Of a DNA stretch of 64,000 bases, positions 26,425 to 48,417 are shown piece after piece (position 1 is the stretch's first letter; each line of letters opens with the position of its first letter). The notes under the pieces are model-generated. The model did no database searches and had not been told where the DNA came from. It saw nothing but the letters and a program-made list of their open reading frames with translations. Both the position numbers and the translations under genes were made by a program. This DNA comes from Hemiscyllium ocellatum (taxonomy: Eukaryota): contig NC_083431.1 in assembly GCF_020745735.1 (NCBI RefSeq), positions 24,022,496 to 24,086,495 on the forward strand. Reading direction: 5' to 3'.

Positions 26425-29400
26425 TTAAATCATGACATGATAAACAGATCAATTTAATAATAACTTGACATTGTAGAAGAGATAGACACAGTCATTGACT
26501 ACAGGCACTGTTTAGTGTGCTGAGATTTTGGCAATGTACATTCACATTAAAAAGAAAGTGTGTTTATATTTAAGGTAATGTTGTCATAGTCCTACTAGAC
26601 CATAGGGCTGATCTTATTAGAGAGAGATGACAGGTGACGGTTTAACCTAAGGGTCACTACTCCTCAGGTGAGGAGAGAAATTAAGAAGGACAGTCCATCC
26701 TAGTAACGGCTGCCCGTTCAGAAATTGAACCCACACTGTTGGTGTCATTTGGCATTGCAAAACAGCTGTCCAACCAACTGAGCTAACCAACTCCTGCTAG
26801 ATTAAAGGATAAAAACAAAAAAAACTGCAGATGCTGGAATCCAAAGTAGACAAACAGGAGGCTGGAAGAACACAGCAAATCAGGCAGCATCAGGAGGTGG
26901 AGAAGTCAACATTTCAGGTATAGCCGTTCTTCAGGCATAGATGTGGGGGTAGTGGGAGGTACAGATAAAGAGGGGGGAATTGGTGTTCGGAGAGTAGGAG
27001 AATGATGGACACAGGTAGTGGGTATGACCTGGTTGGTTGATGGGAGGGATGAATCCAGTTGGTAACTGGAAGGAAGAGTCAGTAGGTGGAATGGAAAGAA
27101 GGAGGAGGGGCTGGAAAGGGAGCCAGGGGATGGATGGGAAGTTTATTTGAAATTTGAGAATTCAGTGTGAAGTCCTTCGGGCTGTAGACTGTTCAGGCAG
27201 AAGGTAAGGTGTTGTTCCTTCAATTTGCAGTCTGATTCACTGTGGTAATGAAAGAGGCCAAGGATGGACATGTCAGAGAGGGTGTAGGCGGGGAATTGGA
27301 ATGGGCTGTGTTGGAGAGGGTGTGGAATAGGTCAATCATAATGCAGGCAAAGACATTTAAGGACCTCTTTCTTAACGCCCAGCAAAGACACTTTCTAGTG
27401 ACAAAAAATACTCTAGGGGAAGGATAAACCATCTGTGGCTAACAAAGAAAATTAAAGTTAGTACCAAATTAAAAGAAAATGTATACAGTTCTTGAAGATT
27501 TTTGATGGGTCAGTAAATTGGGTAAATATAAATCAAGCAAGCATGGAAATAAGGAGGGAGAAATTAGAATATGAGAGAAAGCTAGCTACAACTATAAAGA
27601 CTGATAGAGTGAAGCAATCTCACAGCAATCTCATAAGCTCTGCAATTCTGCTGTGAATGGTAACAGACAATAAAACAATTCACTGGAGGAGGAGTTCCTA
27701 CAAATATTCCAATCCTCAATGATGGGACATTACAATACATAAATGCAAAAGACGAGGCTGAAGCATTTGAAACGATTTTCAGCTCACAGTATAAAATGGA
27801 TGATCCACTGCAGCTTCTTCTCGAAATCCACAGCATCACAGATGCCAGTATCATTCAATTAGATTAACTTCCCTTGATATCAAGAAACAGCTGAAGGTAC
27901 TGGACACTGCAAGTGCCATGAGCCCTGACAACATTCCAGCAATATTACCGATGACATGTCTTCCAGAACAGGCTGTGCCCTTAACCAAGCTCACTTACAA
28001 CACTGGCATCTTTCTGATAATGTAGAAAATTGCCCAGGAATGTCTGTTCATGAAAGCACTATCAGTCTACTCTCAATTATCAGAAAGTAATGAAAGAAGT
28101 TGTCTTAAACATTATCAGTGCGGTTTGCTCACTGATGCTCGGTTTGGGTTCTGACAGAGCCCCTAAGCTCCTGACCTCACAGCACACAAGTGCAAAACAA
28201 AACCCATCTCAAACAAGAGGGAATCTGACCAACTTCATTGTGGCATCACCATCACTGAATTCTCCAATGTCAACATCCAGGGGGTTACTATTGACCAGAA
28301 ACTGAAAGGAACCAGCTATATGGATAAAGTGGCCACAGGAGCAGGTCAGAGACTAGGAATTTTGTGACAAGTAAATCACAAAAGTTTGAAAACATGTACT
28401 AACAGATTCAAGAACAGCTCCTTGCTCTCTAATATCTTGTTTATAATCACCTCTCATATATTAGAGTTGATCATTCCCTGCACCTTCTCTATCACTGTAA
28501 CACTATATTCTATATTCTGTTCTATTACCCTGATGTCCTTAGGTAAGGTATAGTTTGTCTGGACTGCAAACAATGCCTTTCACTGCATCTCAGCACATGT
28601 GACAATAATAAATCAAATCAATACAAAACAAATCTCCTAACTCCCCAAAGTCACCATTTAAAAGCACAAGTTAGGAGCATAATTGAAAACTCTCTAATTA
28701 TTTGGATAAGTGCAGCTCCAACAACACTTGAGAGTACAATACCAACCAGGATAAAGCAATTCACTGCTTTGGCACCCAACCCTCATTCTTCAAAATTTAT
28801 TCCCTCACCCCTGATGCACAATGCAGCAGTTTGTACCATCTACAAGATGCATTGTAATGACTCACTAAGATTCCTTTGACAGTACTTTCAAATCTGCATC
28901 TTTACCACCTGGAAAGCTCAGGGCAGCTGATGTCTGAAAGCACCACCATCAGCTACTTCTCCTTCTACAGCATGAAATCTTGATGTGGAACTATTTTGTG
29001 ATTCATTCCCTGATACTGAGTCCAAATTTTGGAACTTCCTTTCAGTAGCATTGAGATAGATGTGTAGTCACTCACAAATAAGGTAAGCAAAGAGCACTTA
29101 GATTAACATAGATATTATGGGTGAAAAATACAGGCTGGAAATAAAAAATTCTGAAGACCAGAAGTCCAGATGCGCAAGAGGGAGTTAAATTTCTTTTCAC
29201 AATTCTTTTGATTTTAGCAACGATGTCATACTTCTGTCTCTAAAGCAGTGGTCAGTTTTCAATTTGATAGTTGATCAGGTGGACTTAGGTCTTTTGTATC
29301 AGAATTATTTCTATTAAGTTTCTTGTTTTCTTTTGTCTTTCTACTCAGACAGAGAAAAGGGAGAAAGATGTTTTCTGCTTGCTGGTTCTGTATGGTGCAG

Positions 29401-29610
29401 GCTCCACTGCTCCCACTGGTCTATTGATACTGCCCTCACAGTATCCAGTTCCTTAAGCTGTTTCTTGATATCAGAAACATTTACAATTCAAACAACCTGA
29501 GGGCTGTCGCTAGGCAGTTTTTCCTCTCCAGGCAAAATTTCCTGGTGTCACTCTGACTTGATAATATTATGATCTTGCTGCTCCAAAAGCAACTTTGTTT
29601 TGTACAGTTA
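26425..29610 (+). repeat. Left (derived) copy of inverted segmental duplication, block order A-B-C-D
   Basis: Reverse-complement similarity to ~29990-32985 in unique AT-rich flanks as well as in shared TE junctions. Confidence 0.8.
26811..27325 (-). mobile_element. Penelope-like 3' fragment inserted only in the left duplicate
   Basis: Same architecture as 7027-7560 and 42172-42690; the empty site is at ~30795-30815. Confidence 0.65.
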
Positions 29611-29989
29611 AAAAACACATGACCTGATTTTCATACAAGTTGCACATCTAACTTGCTATTTCAGCATTATAACAACGTTCCATTTCAATTTCAGTCTATA
29701 GTTCAAAAAGGAAAAAAATATGGTTCCTTACATCTTTTATTTATAATGATTTCTTTAGCGAAGACAAATGCAAGATATCAGTTTCATTCATTTACCACTT
29801 CCTTATTTTCCATTATTAATTCCAAAAACTACCACCCTAGAGGACCAAAACATACTTTAATAATAACTTCTCTTTTTAAGCACTTTTAGAAACTCTTATT
29901 TTTTTATATTCATGCAGCACTATTGGGTAGGCCAGTGTTTATTGCTAATCCCTAACATCCCTTGAGAAGTTGGTAGTGAGCTCCTTCTA

Positions 29990-32985
29990 AAAATGCTGCT
30001 GTCCATGGAGGGTCAGTGCACACTCCAGTGCTGCTGAAAGGAAATTCCAGAATTTGAACCCAGCAGCAGTGAAGGAATGGCAGATTAGTTCCACATCAAG
30101 ATTGTACGCTGTAGGAGGGAAATTAGCAGGTGGTGGTGCTTTCACATCCTTTATTGCCCTTAGCCTTCGAGATGGGAAGGATGCAGGTTTGAAGGTACTG
30201 CCAAAGGACTCTTGGTGAGATGTTACTGTCCTTGCAGTATCCAGTTCCTTTAGGTGTTTCTTACTATCATAAAAAGTTAATCTAATTGACCGGCATCTGT
30301 GATAATGCTGATCCATAGAGGATGCTGCAGTGGAACAGCTATTTTATACTTCGAGCTGAAGATTGGTTCAAATATTTCATCGTTGTCTTTTGCATTGATG
30401 TGTTCTGATGCTCCATCATTGAGGATTGGGACATTTGTCGAACCTTCTCCTCCCATGAATTATTTTATTATTTGCTACCATTCACGGCAGGACTACAGAA
30501 CTTCGATCTGATCTGTTGGTTGTGAGATTGCTTCGCTCTGTTTATGTTTATAGCTATAGCTAGCTTCCTCTCATACTCATTCTCTCCCTCCTTATTTCTG
30601 TATTAACCATTCGTTGTTTTAATATTCTGTCCAATCTTCTAACCTGTCCAAAATCTTCAAGAATTGTATGCAGTTTCTTTTAACTTGTTACGAGCTTTAA
30701 TTTTCTTTGTAACCTCTAGATGGTTTGTCTTTTCCCTGGAGTACTTTTTGTCAGTAGAAAGTGTTAAAAAAGAGCTCGTTAAAGTCTTCGTCTGTATCCC
30801 TTCTGATCTATCCTTTAATCTAGATGGAGTTGGTTAGTTCAGTTGATTGAACAGCTGTTTTGCAATGCAGAATGATACCAACAGTGTGAATTCAATTACT
30901 GAAAGGGAAGTAGTTAGCTGGATGGACTGTCCAGCTCTCACCACCTGAGGAGTGGTCATCCTTAGGTTACCTTACCACCAGTTGTTTCTTTCTAATAAGA
31001 GAGCAGCCCTATGGTTTGGCAGGACAATGCCAACTTTACCTTTAATATAAACTCACTTCCTTTTTAATGTATGCCGCCAAAATCTAAGCAGACCTAACAG
31101 TATCTGCGGTAAAAAAACTGTGTTTATCTTACACTTACACCAAACACCACCAACTTCATCAGCAGGGACAATGTCGTCAAGCTAGTGGACCTATGCCTTA
31201 CCACCCACTTCACCTTCAGCAACAAAACCTACAGGCAAACCAACAGAATGTCCATGGGATCTCTGATATCAGGGTTCTTAGCAAAGGCAGTAATGCAGAG
31301 ACTCGAACAAACAGCTCTGCCAACCATCCAACCCAGACTTTGGGTCCGCTAAGTGGATGACACCTAGACATCACTAAACAAAATAAATTACAGGCAACCT
31401 TCAAGGTCATTAATAATACTCTTACAGGCATAAAATTCACTAAAGAGGAGGAAAACAATAACAAACTGCCATTCCTAGATGTCGCAGTAGAGTGAACAGC
31501 CAATGGGGACCTTCAAACTAGCATCTACAGGAAAACAACACATACTGAACTACAGAAGCAATCATCCCAACATTCACAAACAAAGCCGCATTAGAACATT
31601 ATTTCAACGAGCCACCACACATTGCAGCACAGTGGTACTACGAAGAGCAGAGGGAAATCACCTATACGGTGTATTCAAAAAGAACGATTACCCAATGAAC
31701 ACAGTCCGCAGATTTTGCAGCAACAAACCCAAACAAGCAGACAAAATGCATCCAGAAATCCTAGCCATTCTCCCCTACATCAAAGACATCTTGGAAATGA
31801 CTGACATGCTACTCAGACCTTTTGGCATCATGGTAGCCCACAAACCCACCAACACACTAAAACAGCAGCTAATGAACTTGAAATACCCTGCAGACAACAA
31901 GCAAAACTAATGTCATTTACAAAATACCTTGCAAGAATTGTAACAAACACTACATTGGACAAACAGGTAGAAAACTCGTCACCAGGATACATCAACATCA
32001 ACTAGCCACAAAAAGGTATGACTCAATCTCACTAGTATCCTTACATACAGATAAGGAAGGACACCATTTTGACTAGAACAACACATTCATCCTAGGACAA
32101 GCCAAACAGAGACATACACACGAATTCCTAGAAACATAGCGTCCCAACTGGAACTCTATAAACAAACACATTGACTTGGATCCCATTTACCAATCCCTGA
32201 GAAAAAGAACAGGAAATGATATCACAACAGGAAATGATACCACCAAAGGAAATGACGTCACCAACCCAAGGAAACCTAAACACATAAATAAACAGCGGGC
32301 CATACCACCAGTGCTTCACCGAAGGCTTACTAATGATGTTACCTAGTATGGAGACGAAACATCTGAAAACAAACCTTCCAGCTCAGCCAGAAAACTTACA
32401 CTCAGAACCTCAACCTGAGCTACAAATCTTCTCAGAACTCACTAACTATGTCTATCTATTCGATAATGTCAAGTTATTATTTAATTGATCGGTTTGTCAT
32501 GTTATGATTAATTGTACAAAACAAAGTTGCTTTTGGAGCAGTGAAATTATAAAATTATCAAGTCAGTGTGACACCAGAAGATTTTGAGTTAAGGAAAACT
32601 GCCTGGTGACAGCCCTGTTTCAACTGTAGGTTGCTGCAGACCTGTGGGAGCAGTGGAACCAGCAAGCAGGAAACATCTTTCTCCCTTATCTCTGTCTGAG
32701 CAGAAAGATTAAAAAAACAAGAAATTTAACAGAAGAAAATTCAAATACATGAAAAGATCTAAGTCCACCTGATAATGATCAAACTGAAAATCAACCATTG
32801 TTTTAGAGACAAGAGCATGTCATCATTGCTAAAATCAAAAGAATTGTGAAAAGCAATTTAACTCCCTCTTGTGATCTGGACTTTTGGTCTTCATAATATA
32901 TTTTTCCAGCCTAGAGTTTTGACCTATATGTCTATGTTAATCTGACTGTTCTTTGCTTGTTTTTTTTCGTGAATGATTACACATA
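29990..32985 (-). repeat. Right (source) copy of the duplication, minus-strand order D-A-B-C
   Basis: See the finding at 26425-32985. The LINE in block C keeps its 3' end, and the interrupted CR1 resumes at ~29750-29900. Confidence 0.8.
31130..32443 (+). mobile_element. Penelope-like element (RT C-term + GIY-YIG), parent type of family C
   Basis: LPFLDV, LNYRSNHPNIHK and NVIYKIPCKNCNKHYIGQTGRKL motifs; decayed hammerhead at ~32328-32365. 14-bp TSD aactgtgtttatct (31116-31129) / aactatgtctatct (32444-32457). Confidence 0.88.
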
Positions 32986-32986
32986 T

Positions 32987-33453
32987 AAGGATGTTGCCAG
33001 GTTTGGGGGATTTGAGCTATAGGGAAAGGTTGAATAGGCTAGGGCTGTTTTCCCAGGAGCATCAGAGGCTGCGGAGTGACCTTATAGAGGTTCATAAAAT
33101 CATAAGGGGCACGGACAGAGTTAAGAGACAAGGTTTTCTTCTCTGGGGTCAGGGAGTCCAGAACTAGAAGGCATAGGCTTAGGGTGAGAAGGGAAAGATA
33201 TAAAAGAGACCTAAGAGGCACGTTTTTCACACAGAGGATAGTAGGTGTATGAGCTGCCAGAGAAAGTGGTGGAGGCTGGTACAATTACAACATTTAGAAG
33301 ACATCTGGATGGGTATATGAGTAGGAAGGGTTTGGAGGAATATAGGCCGGGTGCTGGCAGTTGGGACTAGATTGGGTTGGGATATCTGGTTGGCATGGAC
33401 AAGTTGGATCGAAGGATCTGTTTCTGTGCTATACATCTCTATGACTCTATGAC
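32987..33453 (+). mobile_element. CR1 3' end fragment
   Basis: RMLPGL…RLRSDLIEV and a (ctctatga)n tail. Confidence 0.85.
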
Positions 33454-33770
33454 TCGCTTTGGGGGTTTAAAAGGGTATGGCCTAAGTGAGTAATTGATAT
33501 CTGATCCTTTCTTTTTCCATGCCAATTGTTAAATATTAAGTATGTTTAGAAATAGAGATATTTTCCTTTTAATGATGACCTGGTCAGCATATATTTTGTC
33601 CTGAATACCAGTCTGTCAGGTAAATTGATCATCTTGGTGGTTTATTTGGGTATCTACACATTTGTGATGGCTTATGGAAAAGTAGGTCTTGATTATCTGT
33701 GCACTCTTTCCAGTTAAGTAATATGAATCGAATGAACTAATTACAGGGACCAGGGAAACAGTACTGGGGA

Positions 33771-36700
33771 AGTTATAGAGTCATAGAGATGACAGCATGG
33801 AAACAGAACCTTAGGTCCAATTCATTCATGCTGACCAGATATCCTAACCTAATCTAGTCCCATTTACCAGCACTTGCCCCATATCCCTCTAAACCTTTCC
33901 TATTCATATACCCATTCAGATCCCTTTTAAATGTTGCCATTGTATCAGCCCCCACCACTGCCTCTGGCAGCTCATTCCATACATGTGTGTGTTTTCTGTG
34001 TGAAAAAGTTGCCCATTAGTTCTCTTTTATATCTTTCCCGTCTCACCCTAAACCTATGTCCTCTAGTTTTGGACTCCCCCACCCCAGGGGAGTCTATTTA
34101 CCCTATGCATGCCCCTCATGATTTTATAAACCTCTATAATGACCCCCCTCAGCCTCCCATGCTCCAGGGAAAACAGACCCAGCCTACTCAGCCTCTCCTT
34201 ATATCTCTTATTTTCCAACTCTGGCAACATCCTTGTAAATCTTCTCTGAACCCTTTCAAGTTTCACAACATCCTTCTGACTGGAAAGAGACTAGAATTGC
34301 ACACAATATTCCAAAAATGGCCAAACAAATGTCCTGTACAGCAACAACATGACCTCTCAACTCCTGTACTCAATACTCTGACCAATAAAGGGAAGCATAC
34401 CAACTGCCTTCTTCACTATCCTATCTACCTACGACTCTACTTTCAAGGAGCTATGAACCTGCACTTCATGTCTCTTTGTATAGCAACACTCCCCAGAACC
34501 TTACCATTAAGTGTATAAGTCCAGCTATGATTTCCCTTTCCAAAATGCAGTACCTCACATTTATCTAAATTAAACTCCATCTGCCTCTTCTCAGCCCATT
34601 GGCCCATCTGATCAAGATCCTGTTGTAATCTGTGGTAACCTTCTTTGCTGTCCACTACACCTCTAATTTTTGCGCAAATTTACTAACTATACCTCTTAAG
34701 CTCATATCCAAATAATTTATATAAAATATGAAAAGTAGAGGACCCAGCACCGATCCTTGTGGCACTCCACTGGTCACAGGCCTCCAGTATGAAAAACAAA
34801 CTCCATCAACCTCTGTGTTCTATCTTTGAGCCAGTTCTGTATCCAAATGGCTAGTTCTCCCTGTATTCCATGAGATCTAACCTTGCTAATCAGTCTCCCA
34901 TGAGGAATCTTGTTGAACGCCTTATTGAAGTTCATATCAATCATGTCTATTGCTCTGCCCTCATCAATCCTCTTTGATACTTCTTCAAAAAACTCAATCA
35001 AATTTGTGAGACATGATTTCCCATGCACAAAGCCATGCTGACTATCCCTAATCAGTCCTTGTCTTTCCAAATATGTGTAAATTTTGTCCTTCAGGATTCT
35101 CTCCAACAACTGGACCACCACCAACATCAGGCTCACTGGTCTATAATTGCCTGGCTTTTCCTTACTACCTTTCTTAAATAGTGGCACCATGTTAATCAAC
35201 CTCCAGTCTACTAGCAGCTCACCTGTGACTAACGATGATACAAATATCTCAGCAAGAGGCCCAGCAATCACTTCTCTAGCTTCCCACAGAGTTCTAGGGT
35301 ACACCTGATCAGGTTCTGGGGATTTATCCACTTTTATGCATTTCAAGACATCTAGCACCTCCTCCTCTGTAATATGGACATTTTTCAAGATGTCACCATC
35401 TAGTTCCCTGCATTCTATATCTTCCATGTCCTTCTTCACAGTAATACTTGTTTAGTATCTCCCCCATCTCCTGCAGCTCCGCACATAGGCTGGCTGCTGA
35501 TCTTTGAGCGGTCCTAGTTACCCTTTTGTCCTTAATGTATTTATAAAATTCCTTTGGATTCTCCTTAACTGTATTTGCCAAATCTATCTCCTGTCCCCTT
35601 CTTGCCCTCCTGATTTCCCTCTTAAGTATCCTCCTACTGCCTTTATACTCTTCTAAGGATTCACTCGATCTCTCCTGTCTATACCTGACATATGCGTCCT
35701 TCTTTTTTTGAACCAAAACCTCAATTTCTCTAGTCATCCAGCATTTTCTATCCCTACCAGCCTTTCCTTTCACCCTAACAGGAATACACTGTCTTTGAAA
35801 TTCTTGTGATCTCATTTTTGAAGGCTTCCCATTTTCCAGTTATTTCTTTACCCGCGAACATCTGCGCCCAATCAGCTTTTGAAAGTTCTTGCCTCGTACT
35901 GTCAAAATTAGCCTTCCTCCAATTTAGAACTTCAACTTTTATATCCAGTCTATCCTTTCCATCACTACTTTAAAACTAATAGAATTATAGTCGCTGGCCC
36001 CAAAGTGCTCCCCTACTGACACCTCAGTCACCTGCCCTGCCTTATCTCCCAAGAGTAGGACAAGTTTTGCACTTTCTCTAGTTGGAACATGCACATAATG
36101 AATCACAACATTTTCTTGTACACGCTTAACAAACATGTCTCCATCTAAACACTAAACACTATGGCAGTCCCAGTCTATGTCTGAAAAGTTAAAATCCCCT
36201 AACATGACCACCCTGTTATTCTTATAGGTAACTGAAATCTCCTTACAAATTTATTTCTCAATTTCCCGCTGACTATTAGGGGGTGTATAATATAATCCCA
36301 GTAAGGTGATCATCCCTTTCTTGTTTCTCAGTTCCACCCAAATAACTTCCCTGGAAGCATGTCTGGGAATATCCTCCCTCAGCACAACTGTAATGCTATC
36401 CCTTATCAAAAATGCTATTCCGCCTCCTCTCCTGCTGTCCTTTCTGTCTTTCCTGTAGAATTTGTGTCCTGGAACATTAAGATGCCAGGTCTGTCCATCC
36501 CTGAGCCATGTTTCTACTTTGACATCCCAGTCCCATGTTCCTAATCATGCCCTGAGTTCATCTGCCTTCCCTGTTCGGCCTCTTGCATTGAAGTAAATGC
36601 ACTTTAATCTATCAGTCCAACCTTGTTCTCTGCTTTGTCCCTACCTGCCTGACTGTTTGACTAACTCCTTTTCCCAACTGTACCAGTCTCAGATTGCTGT

Positions 36701-47010: not shown

Positions 47011-48417
47011 AATAAGGTTTAATGTCATGTATATACAAGTTACAAAAGAACAGGAGTACAGTGAAAAGCGTACAATGTCCCAACACACAGCTCCATCTTA
47101 GGTACAAAGTACCTAGGTACAAAAAACAGAGAAAATAAAGAAAAAATATTACACTACATTACAGATATGCATAGTATAAGTTAGGGAAATAAGAAAAATC
47201 TAAAACAAAGGACATTACTGTCTTCCTATAATGGCTTCCATGTGGTCTGACTGGGCTCCCGCAGTTCCCACCTAGGAGTCATCTTCATTCTGGGCCTACT
47301 GGCCTCTGTCCCCATTCTGCTCTGGGCCTCAAGCCACTGTCTCTGCTCTGCTACAAGCCTCAGATCACCGTCGCTGCTCCCCTCCGAGTCACCATCCCTA
47401 CTCCGAGCCGCAGGCCACTGACCCCACTCCACTCCGGGCCTCTGTCCCAGCTCTGCTCCGGGTCACAGGCCGCTGTCCCCACTCCGGGCCGCTGTCCCCA
47501 CTCCGGGCCGCGGGTCGCTGTCCCCACTCCGGGCCACGGGCCGCTGTCCCCACTCTGCTCCTGCTGCAGGCCGCTGTCCCCACTCCGGGCCACGGGCCGC
47601 TGTCCCCACTCCGGGCCACGGGCCGCTGTCCCCACTCTGGTCCTGCTGCAGGCCGCTGTCCCCACTCCGGGCCACGGGCCGCTGTCCCCACTCCGGGCCG
47701 CTGTCCCCACTCCGGGCTGCTGTCCCCACTCCGGGCCGCTGTCCCCACTCCGGGCCGCAGGCCGCTGTCCCCACTCCGGGCCACGGGCCGCTGTCCCCAC
47801 TCCGGGCCATGGGCCGCTGTCCCCACTCTGCTCCGGCTGCAGGCCGCTGTCCCCACTTCGCTCCGGGCCACAGGCCGCTGTCCCCACTCTGCTCCGGCTG
47901 CAGGCCGCTGTCCCCACTTCGCTCCGGGCCACAGGCCGCTGTCCCCACTCTGCTCCGGCTGCAGGCCGCTGTCCCCACTCCGCTCCGGGTCGTTGTCCCC
48001 ACTCCGCTCCGGCTGTTGGCCGCTGTCCCCACTCCGCTCCGGGCCGCAGGCCGCTGTCCCCAGTCCACTCTGGGCCGCTGTCCCCACTCCAGGCCGCTGT
48101 CCCCAGTCCACTCTGGGCCACTGTCCCCACTCCAGGCCGCAAGCCGCTGTCCCCACTCCCCTCCGGGCCACAGGCCGCTGTCCCCACTCCGCTCCGGGCC
48201 ATAGGCCGCTGTCCCCAGTCCACTCTGGGCCGCTATCCCCACTCCAGGCCGCTGTCCTCACTCCGCTCCGGGCCGCTGTTCCCACTCCAGACTGCTGACC
48301 CCCATCCCTGCCATGACAATTGAGATGTAAAAAAACACAATAGCGAGGAAGGAAAGTAAAATGGAATGAACGGAGTAGATGAGCTCTGGCTGGAGAGTCC
48401 TGTTCGCTGCCGCCTTG
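47011..48417 (-). mobile_element. Non-autonomous LINE-tailed composite element containing a VNTR
   Basis: Minus strand ends …tttcactgtac…catgacattaaaccttattct (Rex1/Babar-like 3' end). Direct repeat gaattag at 47004-47010 and 48418-48424. Confidence 0.55.
47400..48295. repeat. GC-rich minisatellite, core GGCCGCTGTCCCCACTCC, unit variants of ~19, 26, 30 and 31 nt
   Basis: Directly visible tandem array. Confidence 0.95.

Follow-up and report, generated by a model that had tools for sequence, protein, structure and literature searches.

Pairs of segmental duplications in the human genome whose blocks are circularly permuted relative to each other have been attributed to circular DNA intermediates (Chicote et al. 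2020, PMC7450558; Takahashi & Innan 2020, PMC7188851), and the translocations of cattle colour-sidedness (KIT locus, Cs29/Cs6) are mentioned as having passed through circular intermediates as well (PMC12235870). Our study concerns an inverted duplication with the same kind of rotated block order in a shark, Hemiscyllium ocellatum, found within 64,000 nucleotides (nt) of NCBI RefSeq assembly GCF_020745735.1 (contig NC_083431.1, positions 24,022,496 to 24,086,495 of the forward strand). We refer to this whole stretch as the window, and all positions given below are counted from its first letter. The duplicated unit, of about 3 kb, is non-coding and transposon-rich; one of its two copies, the right one, has the arrangement of the donor, and the other may have been formed through a circular intermediate.

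An inverted duplication with permuted blocks

Our self-comparison, which combined a repeat search of 25.5-34 kb with a blastn search of this region against the whole 64 kb window, identified four blocks, A, B, C and D, at 26428-29611 that recur in inverted form at 30026-32987 (Table 1). The left copy reads A-B-C-D and the right copy, on the minus strand, D-A-B-C, with the relative orientation alike for all blocks; D and A are contiguous only in the right copy, and C and D only in the left one. This order had been proposed in an earlier note drawn from the sequence of the window, whose coordinates we recovered to within a few bases, and the observation of an inverted, circularly permuted duplication is thereby confirmed. 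Two details of that note had to be amended: block C of the right copy, which had been taken to reach 29990, ends its homology at 30026, and the left C had been extended over 27.9-28.9 kb, where positions 27914-28860, without counterpart in the right copy, are not additional C but the body of a long interspersed nuclear element (LINE) that the right copy has lost. Elsewhere in the window there are only weak, far more diverged relatives of A (17166-17379, 66%) and of C (22054-21792, 64%). A fold-back or palindromic inverted duplication was rejected, because it would give the mirror order ABCD...D'C'B'A'; the right arm reads C'B'A'D', so that D lies on the spacer side in the left arm and on the far side in the right arm.

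The two copies share more than their blocks. In both of them, the head of a repeat that resembles a short interspersed nuclear element (SINE) is followed, after ~15 bp, by a LINE truncated at the identical nucleotide. They also have lesions in common, as a comparison with three independent LINE protein fragments shows: an in-frame stop (EW*Q in place of the EWWW, EWCW or EWRW of the family), a frameshift immediately upstream and a -1 shift at LQPIRF. With this private SINE/LINE joint and these lesions, the chimeric mosaic, already dead, was not inserted twice independently; thus, the copies arose by duplication at the DNA level and not by two transposon insertions. The suggestion that D might be an independent multicopy repeat is not borne out by the summed contig depth, which ranges over 58-297 (58-154 for the left D and 91-297 for the right one), compared with ~40 for single-copy sequence and 1e4 to 2e6 for known repeats in the same comparison. 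Cross-mapping from D's own paralogue, ~86% identical, accounts for much of this depth, and D is near single copy.

The direction of the duplication can be read from the anatomy of the LINE that includes blocks B and C, hereafter LINE1. In the right copy, LINE1 is colinear with independent copies (window 22054-21792; locus L001, 13939-14017) across position 30026 and continues to its 3' end at ~29900; at the equivalent point of the left copy, 29055, the LINE breaks abruptly into D. Three adjacencies are private to the left copy (flank/A, C/D and D/spacer), and those of the right copy are natural: D' is continuous with A', C' leads into the tail of the LINE, and the flank follows this tail. The colinearity of the right LINE across the left breakpoint, together with the left-private joints, therefore identifies the right copy as the donor arrangement and the left copy as the derived one. 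In this respect the earlier note, which had named the right copy as the source with its LINE 3' end kept, was correct, and its placement of an inverted insertion about 300 bp from the source agrees with the ~290 bp that we find beyond the donor LINE 3' end.

At base level, the C/D junction of the left copy reads ...CATTGAG/ATAGATGTG... and joins donor positions 30026 and 32987, around which the donor has ...CACTGGAG/TGTGCAC on the C side and ...CATCCTT/ATATGTG on the D side. A check of the joints for microhomology found C/D to be blunt (0-1 nt). The donor has a single tetranucleotide TTAA at D/A, and the left copy has one at each outer end; these outer ends, 26428 and 29611, both map to one donor point, the TTAA at 32508-32511. 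The right-hand TTAA is followed by an imperfect 12-mer (ACATGACCTGAT), in which the spacer (AAAACACATGACCTGAT) and the start of A (ATCATGACATGAT) agree at 10/12 positions with marginal support (z = 2.8; 10/300 shuffles reach the score). The left flank upstream of A shows no relation to D, and at the junctions we found no inverted termini, no long homology and no filler or templated nucleotides. Tandem remnants, in which the spacer would continue A or the left flank would continue D, were set aside: the short AT-rich matches concerned give only marginal scores (z 2.8-3.6) and are not relied on.

The age of the structure and its reality in the genome were addressed with contigs of four public runs, which were compared with positions 27100-33099. 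A second sample of H. ocellatum provides a 2296-nt contig over 28592-30887, with one mismatch, and a 601-nt contig over 32416-33016. Two other species, ~4% diverged (e.g. 72 mismatches in 1827 nt), also give junction-spanning contigs, which cover C/D (28599-29224), the passage from D through the spacer into C'B'A2' (29200-31005) and D'/A1' (32416-32846). Because independent contigs from the second sample and from two species span the joints, the structure is neither an assembly artefact nor recent, as had been supposed, and with the retroelement in the right A included it predates the split of the three sampled species. The gap-free divergence between the copies, 0.14-0.21 (0.12-0.20 at non-CpG sites), is several times that between species; by block, it amounts at non-CpG sites to 0.139 for D, 0.189 for B and 0.200 for C.

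Routes to the permuted order

The most economical history, which we hold with about even confidence, is that of a unit-length circle, or of a tandem duplicate popping out as a circle, reopened at TTAA; from the product we infer that the intermediate was circular or tandem and that TTAA served as microhomology. The donor would have been a decayed minus-strand mosaic (32987-30026) made of low-copy D, SINE-like A and a 5'-truncated CR1-like LINE (B, body and C). This segment would have been copied at the DNA level and its C-end joined bluntly to its D-start, which would have given either a unit-length circle or the joint within a tandem duplicate, from which a circle was then released. The intermediate would have reopened at the TTAA between D and A and, through TTAA plus the imperfect 12-mer, may have integrated in inverted orientation at a TTAA ~290 bp beyond the donor LINE 3' end, leaving flank-TTAA-A-B-C/D-TTAA-spacer as its product. 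In the probable order of events, the LINE/SINE-like mosaic was in place and decayed before the duplication, and the donor lost its LINE body after it; next, the donor would have gained the retroelement at 31130-32438, the left copy the one at 26815-27345 and the left D a 48-nt patch. The mosaic, the duplication, the deletion and the donor retroelement (31130-32438) all predate the species split.

Under a circular or tandem intermediate, it is automatic that the donor ends are joined in the left copy and that the left ends map to one donor point. In addition, the divergence is of one order across all blocks, as would be expected of a single event, apart from the mild unevenness described below. 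The earlier note had gone further and called the permuted order the signature of a circle. Such a conclusion is accepted in the literature (PMC7450558, PMC7188851), and the order speaks strongly for a circle, but it is not unique to circles, since other routes give an identical product.

It is important to consider several points that weigh against this history. Neither a circle nor an empty acceptor site was seen, and all three species already carry the structure. A 4-bp TTAA in AT-rich DNA is weak evidence alone. The D-start breakpoint of the donor is identical in position to the 5' junction of an unrelated LINE fragment, which under a plain circle model is chance. The divergence is mildly uneven between D with A1 (0.136) and B with C (0.192) at non-CpG sites (z ~2.6), for which alignment gaps in D, gene conversion from one arm to the other or the occurrence of more than one event could account. 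Finally, the same product can be obtained from a linear copy cut once at TTAA with swapped capture, or by three template switches.

This last route is possible, though we consider it rather unlikely. It would be a single event without any circle, in which a linear copy broke once at the D/A TTAA and end joining at a nearby break captured both pieces, with their order exchanged and their orientation kept, or in which microhomology-mediated break-induced replication (MMBIR) or fork stalling and template switching (FoSTeS) made three template switches. The novel junctions that it needs are the same three that the circle needs (flank/A, C/D and D/spacer), and they are blunt or have a 4-nt microhomology, as in end joining or MMBIR. 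Template switching typically produces inverted copies as near to their source as here (~300 bp), and the later 48-nt patch in D would show short templated copying at this locus. However, only 1 of 8 arrangements of captured fragments gives the observed order and orientation, and template switching requires the entry into the donor and the final exit from it to hit the same nucleotide by chance. The junctions also lack filler or templated nucleotides, and no bases were lost at the cut, with TTAA kept on both pieces.

Two separate inverted duplications of different age, one of A-B-C and another of D, are in our judgement improbable, and the earlier note had listed them as an explanation that would overturn its reading. 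The lower divergence of D relative to B and C is what such a history would offer in its favour. Nevertheless, it requires two exact coincidences: the D copy would have to end at the donor nucleotide next to that at which the A-B-C copy starts, and the later copy would have to be placed precisely where the earlier one ends. Moreover, the divergence groups D with A and B with C, and not A, B and C against D.

Rearrangements associated with retrotransposition occur, and a CR1-like LINE fragment (32988-33454) adjoins the donor. Its integration could have triggered the event: the break would have freed the D-start, which was misjoined to C at an internal site of the old LINE, and the resulting small circle would have re-entered at the TTAA 290 bp away. 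We assign a low probability to this chain of events. The D-start coincides to the base with the 5' truncation junction of the fragment, which is ~17-19% diverged from other copies in the window and so of roughly the age of the duplication. Against it, this coincidence of one breakpoint is the sole evidence, transposon boundaries are so dense here that chance would produce it in a few percent of cases, and the fragment is of ordinary structure. If true, it would make the locus a base-resolved germline fossil linking LINE integration to circle formation and local inverted duplication.

Independent insertions of dispersed repeats (LINE, SINE and repeat D), or an assembly artefact, are very improbable substitutes for a duplication: the repeat families of B, C and A2 do have further members in the genome (depth 2,000-11,000), but this explanation is contradicted by the transposon-transposon junction and the inactivating lesions common to both copies, by the near single-copy state of D, by the much greater similarity of the two copies to each other than to any further copy in the window and, for an artefact, by the contigs from three species that independently span the junctions. 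Two routes through RNA were also rejected. A back-spliced circular RNA template finds no GT/AG signals at the donor positions joined in C/D, and a retrotransposed read-through transcript would yield D-A-B-C and not the permuted order.

Anatomy of the blocks and their surroundings

Block C is the 3' region of LINE1, and a 67-amino-acid stop-free piece of B matches LINE fragments in the protein library. By tblastn, the LINE fragments P0002-P0004 align to 27652-28179 in the left copy and to 30545-30227 in the right one. The left copy continues from B into the reverse-transcriptase region and is colinear with the independent LINE copy in locus L001, which is itself 5'-truncated within B, the LINE protein fragments in the database being short. 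Because positions 27914-28860 are colinear with the L001 element, their absence at ~30219-30231 is an internal deletion of the LINE body from the right copy, and not an insertion into the left. The same comparison reveals the nested insert of the left LINE body at ~28380-28633. Separately, joints in contigs of genomic copies elsewhere connect 28306 with 28703 or 28823, and 28423 with 28595, which points to further nested repeats in this body (28303-28823).

Block A appears to be a SINE-like repeat, antisense to LINE1 and head to head with it, a label that rests on reading the sequence. A box A-like motif (TAGCTCAGTTGG) and a box B-like motif (GGTTCAATTTC) are readable on the minus strand of the left A, the diverged relative at 17166-17379 is a SINE-like copy, and the read depth of the right A2' bin is ~11,000 versus ~40 for single copy. 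ARAGORN and Rfam call no transfer RNA (tRNA) in the SINE-like head; the only Rfam matches are sub-threshold (SNORD5, E 0.38) and were treated as chance. Six-frame translations had suggested block A as a LINE endonuclease domain with D upstream of it as a further part of the LINE. We rejected both identifications, given the tRNA-like boxes of A on the opposite strand and its SINE-like match at 17.2 kb, and given that only a 19-amino-acid antisense patch of D resembles LINE fragments at the protein level. As an observation in its own right, the SINE-like repeat meets the 5'-truncated LINE in a head-to-head joint, with the 3' ends of both facing outward (26428-27400; 30740-32509), which is the layout expected of twin-priming-type chimeric retrotransposition.

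The left D carries a 16-nt indel and a 48-nt LINE1-antisense patch (~29425-29473), both lacking in the right D. For the patch, the donor sequence across the deletion joint (30221-30279, 48/59 positions) is a better match than the undeleted left LINE (27875-27916), as is seen at the left edge of the patch; since it spans that joint, the patch is younger than the donor's deletion, and it looks like a short templated insertion copied from ~800 bp away. Its translation reads DIKKQLKELDTVRAV. The spacer has no significant similarity to blocks A-D, beyond the short motif, or to CR1-like LINEs. The interrupted CR1 element that had been thought to resume at ~29750-29900 was not found there, as positions 29612-30025 resemble none of the window's CR1-like LINE copies at either the nucleotide or the protein level.

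Each copy later gained an insertion of its own, as had been proposed. The left one is missing from the right copy, where its flanks are contiguous, and thus post-dates the duplication. The right one is flanked by a target duplication of ~14 nt, AGATA(G/A)ACA(T/C)AGT, to both flanks of which the left 26480-26498 aligns, and it is also present in contigs of both related species. Pfam gave no match for the open reading frames (ORFs) of the insertions, both of which the earlier note had called Penelope; by reading of its sequence, the right one (31130-32438) is putatively Penelope-like.

Beyond the outer edge of D', the CR1-like fragment named above (LINE2 in Table 1) has three other copies in the window, and hundreds of contigs have loose ends here whose consensus departs at 32987. 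Two 3' fragments of this family, 32988-33454 and 33771-34237, lie tail to tail ~316 bp apart (arms 33249-33430 / 33794-33975, 81%), and the right-hand fragment (33771-34237) continues into a longer LINE copy with a reverse-transcriptase ORF at 34774-35439. Farther along, at 47360-48285 on the minus strand, three overlapping ORFs of 259-295 amino acids, in all three frames, contain a repeated GQRP/SGDSG-type unit; they represent a GC-rich tandem-repeat array, not a gene.

Table 1. Blocks, junctions and neighbouring elements of the permuted duplication, in window positions; E, expect value.
Feature	Position	Strand	Counterpart in right copy	Description
A1, left	26428-26498	+	32509-32439 (-)	86% identity, E 2e-17
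A2, left	26480-26811	+	31129-30809 (-)	77% identity, E 2e-68
B, left	27388-27913	+	30764-30231 (-)	76% identity, E 1e-108
C, left	28861-29053	+	30219-30026 (-)	79% identity, E 1e-40
D, left	29057-29623	+	32987-32496 (-)	72.5% identity including gaps, E 7e-94
TTAA, left outer junction	26425-26428			flank/A; homology with right copy starts here
Block A, left	26428-26811	-		putative SINE-like repeat, antisense; tRNA-like head at 26811, tail towards 26428
Insertion in left copy	26815-27345			high-copy retroelement; depth ~20,000 vs ~40; other copies in window
LINE1, left	27346-29055	+		CR1-like LINE, 5'-truncated beside SINE head; lacks last ~125 bp of 3' end
LINE1, left, parts	27388-27913; 27914-28860; 28861-29055			block B; body (with nested insert ~28380-28633); block C
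C/D closure junction	29055-29057			left copy only; blunt, no filler, 0-1 nt microhomology
Block D, left	29057-29611	+		low-copy, non-coding
TTAA, right outer junction	29608-29611			D/spacer
Spacer	29612-29900			AT-rich; original flank downstream of donor LINE 3' end
3' tail of donor LINE1	29901-30025	-		right copy only
Donor LINE1, right	30026-30805	-		C' 30026-30219, B' 30231-30764; 5' truncation near 30805
A2', right	30809-31129	+		SINE-like head and body
Insertion in right copy	31130-32438			very high-copy retroelement splitting A'; depth 2e5 to 1e6
A1', right	32439-32507	+		matches left A1
TTAA, single donor site	32508-32511			contiguous D/A point; D'/A1' spanned by contigs of three species
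Block D', right (donor)	32512-32987	-		depth 91-297
LINE2	32988-33454	+		5'-truncated 3' fragment of abundant CR1-like LINE; 5' junction = outer edge of D' to the base

Comparison with described permuted duplications

Permuted duplications are the main sequence-level evidence for chromosomal circles re-entering the germline. The duplication in H. ocellatum is an event of a known kind, found here in a new lineage and at a small scale; with it, the known range of such events comes to include cartilaginous fish and kilobase sizes. Each of its three novel junctions is defined to the nucleotide, and the anatomy of the transposons suffices to distinguish donor from recipient. Transposon junctions and lesions common to both copies, combined with colinearity to independent copies, provide a worked template for establishing polarity without an outgroup. 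The material consists of decayed transposons and low-copy non-coding DNA, and consequently no functional consequence is evident.

With an ordinary fold-back, our locus shares inverted arms with a short spacer, and it differs in that fold-back arms are mirror-ordered. The human pairs resemble it in the rotated block order between donor and derivative and in a closure junction that joins the two ends of the donor; their junctions show 0-2 nt of microhomology or short indels, without long homology at the breakpoints, which fall mostly in interspersed repeats. They differ from it in size (~20-130 kb or larger), in identity (95-97%) and in the location of the copies, which are usually distant or on other chromosomes. 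The shark copies, in contrast, belong to an elasmobranch, measure ~3 kb, are ~80-86% identical, lie inverted ~290 bp from the donor and have a duplicated TTAA at the integration junctions. In cattle, a chromosomal segment is said to have been copied through a circle and reinserted with permuted order, and that segment reportedly spans hundreds of kilobases, moved between chromosomes, and is recent, polymorphic and associated with a phenotype; the shark duplication is small, local and fixed, with no evident function. Thus, the published cases are large, recent and mammalian, whereas the one described here is small and very old.

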